64,000 nt of DNA, from contig CP075496.1 in the NCBI GenBank assembly GCA_021613535.1, positions 7,378,001-7,442,000 on the forward strand, read 5' to 3'. This stretch comes from Adineta vaga. Its lineage: Eukaryota; Animalia; Rotifera. The position numbers and the translations under genes are program-made. The notes beneath the pieces were generated by a model. It was not told the DNA's origin. It saw nothing but the letters and a program-made list of their open reading frames with translations, and did no database searches. Below, in pieces: positions 42,106 to 49,665 of this stretch; the first letter of the stretch is position 1; each line of letters begins with the position of its first letter.

Positions 42106-43352
42106 ATGTCCTCGGTACCGGTCGCTGAAAGAAATCAAGATGCAACAATCTATGTTGGTGGTCTTGATGAACGCGTTAATGAAACTATTCTTTGGGAATT
42201 ATTTGTTCAAGCTGGTCCTGTTGGTAGGTTTCGTTGCATCCAATCGATAAACTTTCGATTCTAACTACTGTTTTTCTTTTACAGTGAACGTGCATCAGCC
42301 CAAAGATCGCGTCACAATTAACCATCAGGGTTATGGTTTTGTGGAATTTTTAACAGAAGAAGATGCAGATTATGCAATTAAAATAATGAATATGATTAAA
42401 CTCTATGGAAAACCAATACGTGTTAATAAAGTAAAAGAGATATTTTATATCAATACCTATTTAATGTAAAAACGTTTTTAGGCATCAGCACATCAAAAGA
42501 ATCTCGATGTTGGTGCAAATCTGTTTATTGGAAATCTTGATCCTGAAGTTGATGAAAAACTATTATATGACACATTTTCTGCCTTTGGTGTTATTTTACA
42601 GACACCTAAGGTAAGTGTGAAATGATTTTATTTAATAAAGAAATGATCGTTCTTGATTTTAGATTATGCGTGATCCTGATTCAGGCAATTCAAAAGGATA
42701 TGCTTTTATTAATTTTGCTAATTTCGATGGTTCAGATACAGCATTAGAAGCAATGAATGGTCAATATTTATGTAATCGACCAATTACTGTTTCATATGCA
42801 TTTAAGAAAGAATCCAAAGGTGAACGACATGGTTCAGCAGCTGAACGTTTACTCGCTGCTCAAAATCCATTATCACATTCAGACAAACCACATACATTGT
42901 ATGTCATTATATTTTCTTAAAAACAATTCTCTTAATATATTATATTCTTCAATCTTTCTAGATTTGCAGATCAACCACAATTTGCACCAGCACCACCAGT
43001 GCCTCCACCAATAAATCCCTTCCCAATGGCATCATGGTTACCATATGGTGCACTTGGAGGTTTACCTCTACCACCTGGTCTACCCGGTCTTCCACCTCCA
43101 CCACCACCATTTGCCATGGTATGTTGATAACTAAAGGATTTCTCTCATTTTATAACAAGTTTTCTTTAATTTTTTTTTCCTTTAGCAAATGCCTCGACCA
43201 CCGATGGTACCAGCACCAACATCAGCAACAACATTTGTAAGTCAGCCGAAATTTGGATTGATTCAAATATCATTATTTTCTCTTTTTCTAGCGACCACCT
43301 CCAACCGCCACCAAATCGGCCACCACCACCTCCTCCACCTATGATCCAATAA
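42106..43352 (+). CDS. SF3B4: Splicing factor 3B subunit 4 (two RRMs + Pro-rich tail)
   Basis: [84 protein letters not shown]. The stop at 43352 assumes a 1-nt indel in the tail; the uncorrected stop is 43413. Confidence 0.96.
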
Positions 43353-43483
43353 ACATTCTTTCATTTCTTCTTTCGTTATGTACTCAAATAAATGTTCTTT
43401 TTGTTTTTGTCTGAAATAAAAAAAACGAATGATCTGTGTTTATTTCTCTTAGACAAAGAATATATCTTCTATTCTTGAAGATA

Positions 43484-45969
43484 ATGATTTCGAATCGATT
43501 TCGTTCATTGCTAACATTCAACAAAGTATTTTCCTATTCTAAACGATGGACAAATGCAACAGCACATAAACTATCTGATATTCGTATTAGTAAAAAACCG
43601 ATAAAAAAATCTATTTATGCATATAAACGTTCCCAAACAACATATTATGATTGGATGGAAGCAGTAAATCGTGTTGATATTCGACATTCTGACTTTCATC
43701 GTCCATTAATTGTTCGGACAACTGTCAGACAAATTCTTCGTTTTATGCAAGATGGTTATATTGATAAAGAAGAATGGACAACATTTCGTGATTATCTTGT
43801 TAAAAAAGATATCGGTGTTTCACGTTTATTCGATGGAATATTTCTTCATGAATGTATTAGTTATCAACGTCTTCTTATGGCATTATCGTATATAAGTTAT
43901 TTACAATATGAAAATATTCCATTAACACCAACAGGTTTAGGCATGTTACTTTTATTAGCAAGAGAAATTGATGTTCGAAAAGATTTCAATGAATATCGTT
44001 TAGATGAAAAGATTTTATTAAATGCTTATCAAGAATTTCTTTCTTATAATATTGTTCCTGATACAACACTTGCTTTACCAATTATAGCTGGTCTAACATT
44101 AACAACACAATGGAAAGAAGCATTGAAATATTTACCAATATTAGATAATGATCTTGATGGTCTGCAACAAGCATTAGGTTTTGTTTTAACAGCAGCAGCG
44201 AAATTTCATGATTATACATTTTTCTTTTCTCTTCTTGATACTATTTCACAAACCGAAGCTATTCGTTTACCTGAAGAACGTCAACGAATACGATTAGATA
44301 ACAATCAACAAAGTACTTTCGATAGTAAGCCGAAAGTTCCTGTTGATCTCGGAATAAAACGACCAGTGGCACCAGCAAGAATTAAAGAAAGTGATTATTA
44401 TTTAATAGCAAAAACATCTCAAGCTTATGAAACATTTACTGAATATTTAACTGGTGAAACAGATAAACAAATTGAAATATTAGTCAAATTATTAGAAAAA
44501 ACTGCCAAGAATGGTTATATACCACCAATATCATTTGTTAAAGCATTAGACAAAAAATTAAAAGAGTACGTATAAAAATATAGAAATATTGTAGATTATT
44601 TTTAATCGTCGTATTCGAATCTGATTGCCCATCGGACTAGATTGATTATAATTAAATAGGGAAATAGAATATTTGTTGTTCGAATAGTTTCTATTTTATT
44701 ATAGACTTGATCCAAATCGATATCAATGCGAACATATCTGTTTCTATCCAAAGTACGTATCTTCATTCAGTTCTTAATATCAATCTACATCAATTCATAT
44801 TTCTAGTGGAACATCTCTAGATAATAAATCAGTTTTACCATCAATTGAACCAACAGATCAAGAATGTCAACTTATACATTCATCGATACAAACAAATTTT
44901 CAATCATTACTTGAAACTCATTGTCCAAAAGTAAGTTTTTTTGCAATAATTTTCTATTAATTTATGTAATTCGTTAATGATTCTTTTGTTTTCTGTAGCT
45001 TGCAATAGATCCATCGAAATTGCTACATCAACTGTCTGAACCATTCGATGTTCTTTTGGATTGTTATCATTATCCACCACTTGAACTTGATTGGCATGTG
45101 CGACATCCATTATATGTATATTATGAAAAAAAATTCTATGTTTTTATGTTTAAATAAGAAACTATTCTTTAGATTAAACGTATTCTCTATCAAATAGCTG
45201 ATGAAAAAGGAAAACGATGTTTGGTTACTGCTAAAATTGATCTAGCTGATTATATTGATTCACTTCGCATGCCAACTGATCTTGTATCTGTTATTCGTGT
45301 ACCTTACGAGTAAGAAGAATACATTTATTCATATATTTATGCTATTATCTCTTACGTCTAAGATCAATCAAAAGTCCATTACCATTATTATCAGCATTAT
45401 ATCATAATCCAACAACATTACTTGCTAGTCCAGTTGATCAACGTATCTATAAAACATTATTAGGTTTAGATAATATTGATATATTTGATCGATGGATACA
45501 AACTCATCAATTGATACCAGTTGCAAAACCAGATCTCGTCTATCTACAGGTAAGAATAAGAATGAGCACAGATCAAACGAAACTACAATAAAAAAATACA
45601 CTAAAATATAGGATTAGAATTTGAATGATTTTTAACAAATGAGTGTTTAAATCTTTGTGTACCGTATCGAAAAATTTGTTCTCTATCGAAATCGTATGGA
45701 TTTCATTTGTATTTCTAAAGTTTGAAGTAATATGAAGAATTCTAGATCGATGATCGAATTCTTTATTTATCTAATTGTTTATATCTAAATAATTTCTCTC
45801 TCTCTCTCTTATTTATATAAATATTTATATTTCATAGGCTCCATGTTCATATACAACACGTGTTCATGTCGATGCACATGAATGGCTTATACCATATTTT
45901 GATGGATCACCGTTGACTGAAGCTGAATATGTTCAAACATGGTTTCGTGTTCAAATAAATAATAATTAA
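43484..45969 (+). CDS. PRORP/MRPP3-like paralog A, catalytically degenerate
   Basis: Mitochondrial presequence-like N-terminus, helical PPR-like region, 'EPFDVLLD', 'IFDRWIQTHQL', 'WLIPY...TWF'. Architecture and several intron positions are shared with the adjacent PRORP-like gene. Confidence 0.7.
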
Positions 45970-46029
45970 ACGATCTTTTCCGAGATCATTTTTGTTATGG
46001 ATATCTGTTTTTGTTTCGTTTCTTTTCAG

Positions 46030-48439
46030 ATGTTATTTTCTCATTCTCGTCGTTTATGTCCCACTCTATATCGACAAATAATTCCTATTATAAATCATAA
46101 TCCATCAATCCATTCGATTCAATCGAAAGATATCATCCAAATTCGTCATTCAAGTATTAGTGAACAAATGAAACGAAAAATTCTACTAAAAATTAACACA
46201 GTTCTCAAAGAAACTGATAAGATTGATGGAAATATAACTGATACAGATATAGCAAATATCGCTTGTTTAAATAATGAACTTATTCTCTCCGAACGTATGA
46301 TAAAATTTCCATTTCATTATCGTTGTGTATTAGAACAACAACTATCTATCTGTCCAGATCGTTGGGTATCAATAGATGAATGGAAAAATCTATATGATGT
46401 TGTTGGTGAAACAGTTAAACCATTATTTGGTTCAGTCACAATGCTTGTTTGTGTACAATTGAAACATATTGAACGTGGTCGATCATTATTTCAATTTATT
46501 CAAGAACATCATTCACATTTATTAACATCAACAGCAACAATCTATTCGGCGTATATGAATTTATTAGCGCTTGACTTTTTTACTTTAAAAGGCAAGAAAC
46601 ATGGACAAGATTATTCATTATACGAAAAAGAAATATATGAAATCTATCAAAAATATGTTAAAGATAAAAAACAGGTAAACTATTAAAACTAGTCCAAACA
46701 ATCTTGAATTCCGATTGAGATCTACTGTATATAATCGATAAGTAAACATTCTATTGTTATCTTTTTTCTAGGCGATTATCGCATCAGCATCTGCATTGAG
46801 TATTATCAAAGGTTTATGTGTTACTCGTCATTGGCGTGAAGGATATTCCTATATACCTTTCGTTAATGATGATGATCAAATACAAGTAATTAGAGAGTAT
46901 GTTATCATGAACGATATTTATTCCTTTTAAGAATGAATATATTGAAAAAAAGAATAGTATTGTGTTTTTTAATTTAAAGTCTTATTCTTGCTGCTGTACA
47001 TAATGATGATATTCAAGCAGCAACTAAATTGTTGAAGAATTTTAAACATCCACTTCCGAATGATAGTGCAGCAGCAACAATGTCAAGTTCATTAACTGAA
47101 ATGATACGAGATATCTTTAGAAATCTGAATGAAAATAATACAAATGCTTATGAATTTATTGAACATTTATTTCAATATCTATCAACATTAGATTATTTTA
47201 TGGAAAAACCAGCTATAGATGAAATGCAAACATTTTTTGATAAGTTGGTTTGATGAATTATTCTGTTTTTCTGTTCAATTCAGAATTATTTCGTGTAGAT
47301 TAAAACCAAAGATGTTACAATATGGTACAACATTGGTGTTTCCAAAGTAAAATCAATTGAATGAGTAATCTATTTTATGTGAATTGAATCTTTCATTGGA
47401 TTTAGTGGTGCTTGTAAACAATTACCTGGTGTAAATTTATCGAATGGTGAATTAAGTGATGATGATTTTAAATTTTTGCAAAATTATCTGATGGAGAGTG
47501 CTTATACAGATAAAGAAGTTTTCAATGTAAGTATGATTTGCAATGTCTTTTACTAAAGAATCTTATTCATTTAAATAGACTACAACACCAGATGAATTTA
47601 AGAGATTTCAAAAATTTCTTAGTCAACATCAATTCTCAATGATCGTCGATGGTTTAAATCTACTCTATGGTATCGATCGATTTGCTACTGATCCTGTTAA
47701 TTCAATGATCAAAGTTTGACATTATAAGATTGATTGAACAAAGAAAATCTCTCTTCTCTATTCTGTGTAGACAATCAATTTTTTAAAGAACTTACGTATA
47801 CCTCGAAAAAAATTATTATTTATTGCACGTAAACATGCACTATCTCGTATACCTTATCAAATTCAGGAAAATTTACGTTCCATCTGTGAAATCTTTCTTG
47901 TTGATAATACGTAAATATCAATAGTGCTTGACATATACGAACACACGAAAATGTCAATTATTTTCGTTGTTTTCTAGTTCTCGTGATGATTGGTTTGTTT
48001 TATATGCTGCATTACAGTCGAAAGCATATGTTTTAACATCAGATATTTTAAGAAAAGAACGTGGCATAGCAAATAAATCTACTCCAGCAAAAAATGCTGA
48101 AGTTAATGAAAGATTACAAAAATGGCTCTATCGATATCAATATTTGTTTATTCGACAGGATAAACGCGTTTTTTTCAAAGTAAATATATCCATTCACATA
48201 TATTGTCTTACAGTTATTATATTTTCTTCAAAACTTTCTTCTAGCAACCATTAGCATATAAATTAAGAGCTCAATATATTCAAAATATCTGGTTAATTCC
48301 ATACTTTAATGAAAAACCATTAACATTGGCTCAACGACCAGATAATTGGTTTTATATTTATAAAAATTCCGATAAACCACTGACAAGAAAACTTACAAAA
48401 AAATCAACTATAATTGAAAATGAAAAGGAATCTATCTAA
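46030..48439 (+). CDS. PRORP: Protein-only RNase P (PRORP/MRPP3)-like paralog B
   Basis: Presequence ending QIRHSS; 'TTPDEFKRFQKFL...IVDGLN', 'LFIARKH', 'SRDDWFVLYAAL', 'LTSDILR', 'LQKWLYRYQ', 'WLIPYF' match the NYN metallonuclease domain of PRORP. Confidence 0.88.
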
Positions 48440-49665
48440 TTGGTTTTCTTTTCTGAATCACTAATAAACGTTTATGAAAAGGAATTTTTAGAGATGCATA
48501 AGACAAGTAAAAATAGATCGATTACAAAGTAAATATAATACTAAGCTATCTCGTATGTATATATGACATGGATCTGATGATTAAAAAGTTTAGCAGCAAG
48601 GAAAAAGTGATTTATTTTATTGCTCAAATTTCTAAGTGATCAATAGAAAAACTAATTCTTTTGTAAGCATATGTTCCGGAAGAAAGTTTTTCTAATTTTT
48701 TATCGATGATAGATAAATCAAATCGATAACTACATCAAAAACTCTATTCTTTATTTGGTCTAAAGTAATTTTTATTCTATTCGAACAATGGCTCAAGGAA
48801 CTAACCTCCAAGGTTATCAAAAGAATAGTTTCTTAAGAGGTTTTCTTTCACACTATAACGAGAGAGAAAGAAAAAACTTCTCTTTCACCGTCTTGTCTTG
48901 TTATATTAATGTCAATGAAAAAGATTAGTATCAGGTAGTCTATACCAGACATTTGGAAACTGATAAGTTCAAATCACTTCAGCTTATATAATTCATGAAT
49001 TATTCAAATTCATTCTCATCAATCAAATGTGATTCTTTTTATGAGATTCATACCGAAACAATTCAAATATACATATATATGTAATTAATCATACAAAAGA
49101 AAAGGGAGAATTCTGTCATCAATGTAAGAGTTCATTTAACCTTGTCAGCTGATCTATTTTTGGTATGAGGCAAAAAATAACACATTGTGATTGTGCTTGT
49201 ATGAATAGCAAGTAGAACAAGAAGGACATTGCAATCACTTCACAGAGTCCTTCATTTACTACTACTGCTACGAACATCGCCTCGAAAAAAAAATATTGTG
49301 TATTCTTCGTTCCTGCTCACTCGAACTTTTTTTTTCTCTTCTTCTACTCTTTACCTCTACGTTTCGCAAAACATGTCATTGTATGAAGATTCTCTCTCGT
49401 TAGTACGCAAAGAGTAATATAGAAAAAAACTTGTTATCGATCAAAATATTCCTATTTCTCCAGGTTGATTGTTAATTAAACAGAAGTAAAGAGAAAAAGA
49501 CGTACGTATTACTTAACAAGAACTGTCTCGACTGGTTATGTCCTTCTGCAATTATAATGAACCTTGAGGTGAGTTAATAGGGTGAAAAAAATATTTTTGT
49601 TCCATGTATATAAAGCTCTTTACTTTTCAGGTATAGCTTTGTCTATGTAAAAAAAAACGGCTCTC

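Follow-up and report, generated by a model that had tools for sequence, protein, structure and literature searches.

The main finding of this work is the identification, in Adineta vaga, a rotifer of the bdelloids, of two adjacent genes for protein-only RNase P (PRORP), of which the downstream one, B, is predicted to encode a catalytically competent nuclease, whereas the upstream one, A, encodes a full-length homolog that has lost three of the four catalytic aspartates and yet is at least as conserved across bdelloids as its neighbour. The pair occupies positions 43484 to 48439 of a stretch of 64,000 nucleotides, hereafter the window, taken from contig CP075496.1 (positions 7,378,001 to 7,442,000 of the forward strand, assembly GCA_021613535.1). 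Our preferred reading, to which we lean without holding it firmly, is that A stays in the 5'-processing of mitochondrial tRNAs, where it would assist or regulate, as a partner protein, either B or a TRMT10C-like subcomplex.

Gene models and catalytic pockets of the two paralogs

The two genes were rebuilt by translating positions 43000-49000, which resulted in two complete, co-oriented genes on the + strand, with all introns of the GT-AG type. Gene A (43484-45969) comprises seven exons and encodes 608 amino acids in a spliced frame without stop codons, and gene B (46030-48439) comprises nine exons and encodes 624 amino acids. The B model agrees with an independent annotation, since it is identical, residue for residue, to the 624 amino acids of the annotated 'hypothetical protein I4U23_019356 [Adineta vaga]' (P0046). 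In their final six exons the two genes correspond one to one in order, position and entry phase, starting with an exon of 48 nt in each gene. The N-termini of both proteins are basic, hydroxyl-rich and almost without acidic residues, a composition that fits a mitochondrial presequence. All of this agrees with the original prediction, made from the letters of the window, which had described two co-oriented genes 60 bp apart with common intron positions, including the 48-nt exon pair, presequence-like N-termini and a spliced A frame without stops. The positions it gave for the motifs IVDGLN, SRDDWF and TSD in B, and for the matching stretches PFDVLLD, KSPLP and ASPVD in A, were likewise correct (Table 1).

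Gene B, which had been proposed as a putatively active nuclease, is predicted to encode a catalytically competent protein-only RNase P nuclease, as judged from its four aspartates and its basic nuclease half. The whole protein matches the Pfam PRORP family (PF16953) with 118.3 bits and an E-value of 5.4e-34 over profile positions 4-240 of 242, above the gathering threshold of 39.1 bits, below which the A orthologs fall; in the exon-by-exon search, exons 6 and 8 of B match the same profile at colinear positions. The best solved relative of B is human MRPP3 (E 5e-19), and in the alignment with this protein the motifs IVDGLN, SRDDWF and TSD fall on human D409, D478/D479 and D499, respectively. 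The four catalytic aspartates are invariant in four bdelloid B orthologs. The AlphaFold2 (AF2) model of B, with a predicted local distance difference test (pLDDT) score of about 72, has human PRORP, as found in the mitochondrial RNase P complex (7onu_E), as its best fold match (E 5.7e-22, 514 columns). Full-length B proteins were reached by way of the cluster to which a Didymodactylos fragment belongs, its protein of 527 amino acids serving as the next query; a search of representative proteins with B exon 8 returned only fragments, and a query with a mixed alignment of A and B-fragment sequences returned only A-type proteins.

The assignment of A as a strongly diverged full-length PRORP homolog, also proposed earlier, is secure at the level of sequence comparison. 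Gene A of the window was searched exon by exon, with the ortholog of Adineta steineri (P0003, 82% identical) standing in for the full-length protein, and its exons were joined only for the checks of frame, composition and codon substitution. Against Pfam PRORP, the window exons reach at most 11.5 bits (exon 6) and the full-length orthologs of A. steineri, Rotaria sordida and R. magnacalcarata reach 24.9-29.0 bits (E 1e-6 to 2e-5), while one A ortholog gave no match to this profile. Although A lies below the gathering threshold, its homology is secured by the A profile and by hhalign. A four-species A profile matches human MRPP3 in HMMER (E 5e-6) across the central and nuclease domains; a single A ortholog as query found no PRORP among the solved structures, so that the four-sequence profile was needed. 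With hhalign, the A family aligns to the B family with 98.5% probability (E 1.4e-15) over 488 columns, including the helical N-terminal half, and residues 74-235 of A match the PPR region of B with 28% identity (E 6e-10). The AF2 model of the A. steineri ortholog (pLDDT 71.5) also has 7onu_E as its best match (E 1.5e-18, 546 columns), with plant PRORPs next. The models of both A (as its ortholog) and B combine PPR, split central and NYN parts in one chain, at moderate confidence and from shallow input alignments of nine sequences in which A, B and insect PRORP were mixed. Of the checks that had been proposed with the original prediction, the search with PF16953 separates the paralogs, since only B exceeds the threshold, and structure prediction unites them in a common match to human PRORP.

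As regards the catalytic pocket, a site of four aspartates defines the PRORP subtype (PMC10941002), and previous work with human MRPP3 has shown that D479N and D499N abolish activity, that D478N leaves very little of it and that D409N retains part of it (PMC4477676). B has the complete pocket, whereas A keeps only the equivalent of D409, in the stretch PFDVLLD, which aligns to human FDVVIDGLN and whose Asp does not vary among the 10 sequences of A, B and insect PRORP aligned with MAFFT. The Asp pair is replaced in A by K/S-P (S-A in Didymodactylos) and the equivalent of D499 by Pro (Ala in Didymodactylos); in the HMMER profile alignment to MRPP3, in MAFFT and in hhalign alike, acidic residues are absent from A at the positions of DD and TSD/TRD. 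Therefore, through the loss of essential Asp positions, A lacks a defining feature of active PRORPs while keeping their architecture, and the earlier description of A as catalytically degenerate is borne out.

The charge of the two proteins differs as well. The half that comprises the central and NYN domains is acidic in four A orthologs, with isoelectric points (pI) of 5.6-6.1 and net charges of -3 to -8, and basic in four B orthologs (pI 8.9-9.7, net +5 to +16); insect PRORP has a pI of 9.3. This acidic half fits a domain of A that would no longer hold the acceptor stem and leader of pre-tRNA, and since it is unlike B and insect PRORP, A is less likely to bind pre-tRNA as PRORP nuclease domains do. 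A also carries an insert between its PPR-like and central parts (about residues 266-330, within exon 1) that the alignment places in neither B nor insect PRORP. It consists of a long helix, a low-confidence linker and then the sequence KESDYYLI.KTSQ.YETF.NYLTG, invariant in the A orthologs; part of the insert is predicted to be disordered. In one A-type protein, from Rotaria sp. Silwood1 (P0041, 690 amino acids), the segment from SIKSPLP to the C-terminal strands occurs twice, as an annotation error or a local exon duplication.

Conservation, packing and origin of the pair

Both A and B are under purifying selection. In comparisons of the window with four to five bdelloid loci, Nei-Gojobori ratios of nonsynonymous to synonymous substitution rates (dN/dS) are 0.13-0.37 for A and 0.15-0.38 for B; the uncorrected ratio of the corresponding proportions of differences (pN/pS) lies in the range of 0.24-0.43 for A, its 95% bootstrap upper limits do not exceed 0.53, and dN of A is below dN of B in all five comparisons. 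The dS estimates are unreliable, with pS of 0.28-0.6 between genera and above 0.75 for one contig, probably as a result of strong AT bias and saturation. Since the synonymous distances look compressed or saturated, pN/pS is to be read as a conservative upper bound. For members of different families, Adineta and Rotaria differ surprisingly little at synonymous sites (pS 0.28-0.43, window against L013, L005 and L014), which is likely due to AT-biased codon usage compressing the attainable pS; with pS compressed in this way, dN/dS from simple counting would be inflated in the A. vaga genome.

A. steineri, R. sordida and R. magnacalcarata share with the window the order of genes WH1 (minus strand), RRM/SF3B4-like, A, B, and two long bdelloid-like contigs from an environmental assembly in ENA also carry A next to B. 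Across five other bdelloid loci all exons of A and B have the same structure and the A frame is intact, and A proteins of 602-611 amino acids have been annotated independently in three species. Both an A-type and a B-type protein are present in Didymodactylos carnosus, which places the duplication before the sampled bdelloid genera diverged. A thus combines the loss of catalytic residues with purifying selection, as a pseudoenzyme does, and the claim that it is retained and not decaying holds in these loci. None of the observations that had been named as contrary to the original prediction was made: A has a PRORP fold in its ortholog's model, lacks acidic residues at the lost sites and does not evolve neutrally.

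Searches of the 100.8-Mb genome, whose 6 contigs include the window on contig 4, with the A protein and the PRORP profile revealed no further PRORP-like locus, and A is single-copy. Two weak matches to the profile were rejected, one on contig 6 (L003) in low-complexity, non-coding-looking DNA and the other (L004) in an open reading frame resembling a B-box zinc finger. In one R. magnacalcarata assembly (GCA_965140935.1, L015 10382-15229), B is annotated as a product of 902 amino acids running into the next gene, probably an annotation fusion; in the other assembly of this species it has 630 amino acids (L014 10385-12836).

The spacer between A and B looks, in its sequence, like an operon intercistronic region. 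The interval from the A stop to the B ATG, 60 nt in the window, is 64-94 nt in the other five bdelloid loci, with the acceptor directly at the B ATG. In all six loci (the window, L013, L005, L014, L016 and L017) the spacer is U-rich and a CAG or TAG acceptor abuts the B ATG, and in four of the six ATTAAA overlaps the A stop. The B mRNA may be started by spliced-leader addition at this acceptor, a putative trans-splice site, and A and B may be made from one transcription unit; the packing of the two genes predicts their co-expression. Upstream, an AG lies 3 nt before the A ATG, and the proline-rich C-terminal exons of an RRM/SF3B4-like gene on the same strand (42999-43352) end 131 nt before it. 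The donor of A exon 6 (45549) is phase-compatible with the acceptor at 46029, and a hypothetical cis-spliced A-B fusion would stay in frame.

The zinc site of the PRORP central domain, whose ligands in PRORP1 are a CxxC motif together with a C-terminal His and Cys, is incomplete in both proteins. The motifs GxCxxC, WHIP and WLC of the human and insect proteins read GACKQL, WLIPYF and WFYIY in B, with one Cys kept, and GTSLDN, WLIPYF and WFRVQ in A, with no Cys kept. A and B have in common the derived states WLIPYF for WHIP, PNG for the KSG of other animals and the loss of CxxC, as well as six intron positions, and they are therefore each other's closest relatives. The simplest history compatible with these sequences would be a loss of the zinc site, then a tandem duplication in the rotifer lineage and then an asymmetric divergence; the Pfam PRORP scores are 25-29 bits for A orthologs and 118 for B, which is itself strongly diverged when compared to the 280 bits of insect PRORP. 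The tandem duplication of a mitochondrial-type PRORP gene took place before Adineta, Rotaria and Didymodactylos separated, a minimum age that comes from bdelloids only.

Nuclear RNase P RNA, TRMT10C-like genes and feature coordinates

The A. vaga genome contains a full-length gene for the nuclear RNase P RNA (L026, C3:9934531-9934851, minus strand; Rfam RF00009, 139 bits, E 2e-40), and its nuclear RNase P is therefore expected to be of the ribonucleoprotein type, as in other animals. Since the nuclear enzyme would be RNA-based, both PRORP copies are expected to be mitochondrial. The original prediction had allowed for a missing TRMT10C, which is not what was found: for at least six loci the best solved relative is TRMT10C (E 1e-14 to 1e-17), with matches extending into the N-terminal part of TRMT10C, and a separate TRMT10A-like gene is also present (L018). 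The mitochondrial TRM10 homolog (TRMT10C) of the metazoan multi-subunit mitochondrial RNase P, which combines PRORP, TRMT10C and SDR5C1, is thereby represented in this genome. The TRMT10C-like loci form four divergent groups (L020 and L022, 73% identical; L019 and L023, 96% identical; L021 alone; L024 alone), with identities of 34-48% between groups. Other animals presumably have a single TRMT10C, and the methyltransferase subunit of mitochondrial RNase P may have diversified along with PRORP in the A. vaga genome.

Table 1. Positions of the A and B exons and of their spacer in the window, and of TRMT10C-like loci on the contigs of the A. vaga genome.
Feature	Position	Strand	Characteristics
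A exon 1	43484-44565	+	360 codons + 2 nt; presequence-like N-terminus, PPR-like helical domain, A-specific insert; open frame, GT donor; 74-81% identity to bdelloid orthologs
A exon 2	44705-44752	+	48 nt, counterpart of B exon 4; AG/GT boundaries, entry phase 2 in both
A exon 3	44807-44930	+	Central-domain strand; place of the PRORP CxxC, without Cys in A
A exon 4	44999-45115	+	First NYN motif PFDVLLDCYH; sole retained catalytic Asp (human D409 equivalent)
A exon 5	45173-45309	+	76-91% identity to orthologs
A exon 6	45363-45549	+	Degenerate pocket, KSPLP for xDDxF and ASPVD for TSD/TRD; weak Pfam PRORP match, profile positions 149-192
A exon 7	45838-45969	+	Stop codon; WLIPYF for PRORP WHIP (zinc-ligand His lost); 34-44% identity to B exon 9
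A-B spacer	45970-46029	+	60 nt; ATTAAA overlapping A stop, U-rich tract, CAG acceptor abutting B ATG
B exon 1	46030-46674	+	Presequence-like N-terminus, first PPR-like helices
B exon 2	46772-46896	+	Gene model identical to P0046
B exon 3	46980-47243	+	Gene model identical to P0046
B exon 4	47299-47346	+	48 nt, counterpart of A exon 2
B exon 5	47406-47526	+	Central domain; GACKQL, only the first Cys of CxxC remains
B exon 6	47579-47713	+	IVDGLN, Asp codon at 47648 (human D409 equivalent); Pfam PRORP 25.2 bits for the exon alone
B exon 7	47771-47910	+	Gene model identical to P0046
B exon 8	47978-48179	+	SRDDWF at 47985 and TSD at 48042 (human D478/D479 and D499); Pfam PRORP 26.3 bits for the exon alone
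B exon 9	48245-48439	+	Stop codon; WLIPYF (zinc-ligand His lost)
TRMT10C-like locus L019	C3:3984569-3984796		
TRMT10C-like locus L023	C3:4018144-4018341		
TRMT10C-like locus L020	C4:4520579-4520884		
TRMT10C-like locus L022	C1:8117882-8118196		
TRMT10C-like locus L021	C6:8479688-8479975		
TRMT10C-like locus L024	C2:4001587-4001706		
TRMT10C-like locus L025	C3:8578415-8578767		Possible further locus

Possible roles of A and their significance

We hypothesize that A is a pseudo-nuclease whose work involves no cutting of RNA. Its place would most likely be alongside B in the 5'-processing of mitochondrial tRNAs, where it would partner or regulate B or a TRMT10C-type subcomplex and might hold RNA through its PPR part. 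The human mitochondrial PRORP (MRPP3; 7onu_E, 4xgl), the nuclease subunit of mitochondrial RNase P, is the best sequence and fold match for A as well as for B and is likewise built of PPR, central and NYN parts; the equivalents of its D409, D478, D479 and D499 are present in B, and genes for TRMT10C-like partners are found in the A. vaga genome. The human genome has one PRORP gene, whereas the A. vaga locus has two, in both of which the zinc ligands are lost and one of which, A, is acidic and without three of the four Asp. As for degenerate partners of active enzymes, ADAT3 is a dead paralog that works with ADAT2, and the nuclease folds of PIN and NYN domains are related in structure. The retention of a degenerate paralog beside an active one, with association and activation shown, is also described for the SMG5-SMG6 composite PIN domain and for the trypanosome AdoMetDC prozyme (PMC12923823, PMC5201418). 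In these three systems the physical association is known, whereas that of the rotifer A and B is a hypothesis. A complex prediction for the two A. steineri proteins (residues 52-611 of A, residues 160-597 of B) scored 0.00, a value that is evidence neither of binding nor of its absence.

Several points weigh against a role of A beside B. The original prediction had suggested A as an RNA-binding or scaffold subunit of a non-canonical mitochondrial RNase P; the acidic nuclease-like half speaks against a simple 'RNA-binding subunit' version of this role and makes that version less likely. The adjacency of A and B is mostly explained by their tandem origin and says little by itself on a shared function. 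The AF2 input alignment included B and insect PRORP, which biases the model of A to a PRORP fold, and the residue equivalences come from sequence and profile alignments and not from atomic coordinates. Finally, three acidic residues near the old pocket, namely the retained Asp, the Glu of PYE and an Asp two residues after the lost D499 position, are invariant in the four A orthologs, including that of Didymodactylos, and could form a remodelled metal site.

The main alternative, which we hold to be rather unlikely, is that A has acquired a new function independent of B, as a mitochondrial PPR-like protein with a structural NYN-like module in other organellar RNA metabolism or in protein assembly, and that it is the neighbour of B only through the tandem duplication. 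Such a function would agree with the acidic nuclease-like half, unlike the RNA-binding domains of PRORPs, with the conserved insert that A has of its own and its invariant KESDYYLI...YETF...YLTG, and with the very long A branch (25-29 Pfam bits against 118 for B). However, there is no positive pointer to another pathway, the full PRORP architecture is conserved in A, including the central domain and the C-terminal strands, and the pair is adjacent, with a short interval from stop to ATG, in all six loci examined.

Within the preferred role of A as a partner of B, a more far-reaching proposal, which we regard as doubtful, is that the bdelloid mitochondrial RNase P is a heteromeric PRORP in which the basic B cuts and the acidic, dead A is obligatory, positioning or activating B or bridging it to a TRMT10C-like protein, with a fixed stoichiometry set by expression from one spliced-leader operon. 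If this were true, no PRORP before the heteromeric bdelloid enzyme would have been known to rely on an inactive copy of itself.

It is improbable that A is still a nuclease, perhaps with another substrate, whose acidic site has been remodelled around the invariant trio of acidic residues described above, even though nucleases of the PIN/NYN type can function with three to four carboxylates. The nuclease-like domain of A no longer has a net positive charge, and the position of D499 is taken by Pro. Moreover, the D479 and D499 positions, whose substitution is lethal to the activity of human MRPP3 (PMC4477676), are Ser, Lys, Pro or Ala in A. A reading of A as a pseudogene in decay, or as a product of a faulty exon model, to which its score below the Pfam gathering threshold might point, is effectively excluded by its intact frame of 608 codons in seven canonical GT-AG exons, by the same exon structure and intact frame in the five other bdelloid loci, by the proteins annotated independently in three species, by a pN/pS well below 1 and by its lower divergence when compared to B.

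PRORP has been studied intensively as an example of a ribozyme replaced by a protein enzyme, and its mitochondrial form in animals is unusual in that it requires two recruited subunits. Our literature search found no paper treating PRORP together with rotifers. PRORP duplicates retained within one organism have been described, such as PRORP1, 2 and 3 of Arabidopsis and PRORP1/2 of trypanosomes, but these paralogs are all active single-polypeptide enzymes split between compartments, and those discussed in a 2024 review of protein-only RNase P are all active isoenzymes (PMC10941002). The A. vaga pair differs from them in that one pocket is degenerate, both proteins look mitochondrial and the nuclear enzyme is expected to be RNA-based. 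To the best of our knowledge, A is the first conserved pseudo-PRORP, and it occurs in a lineage in which the zinc site has been lost from both copies. Since A has lost both the pocket and the charge and yet is conserved to the degree seen across bdelloids, the PRORP scaffold would appear to have a selectable non-catalytic use, and the A-B pair offers a natural system for the question of how PRORPs recruit or depend on protein partners. The loss of the zinc site in both copies and the multiplied TRMT10C-like genes set the bdelloid lineage apart from other animals, and suggest that the whole mitochondrial tRNA-processing machine may have been rebuilt in this lineage.

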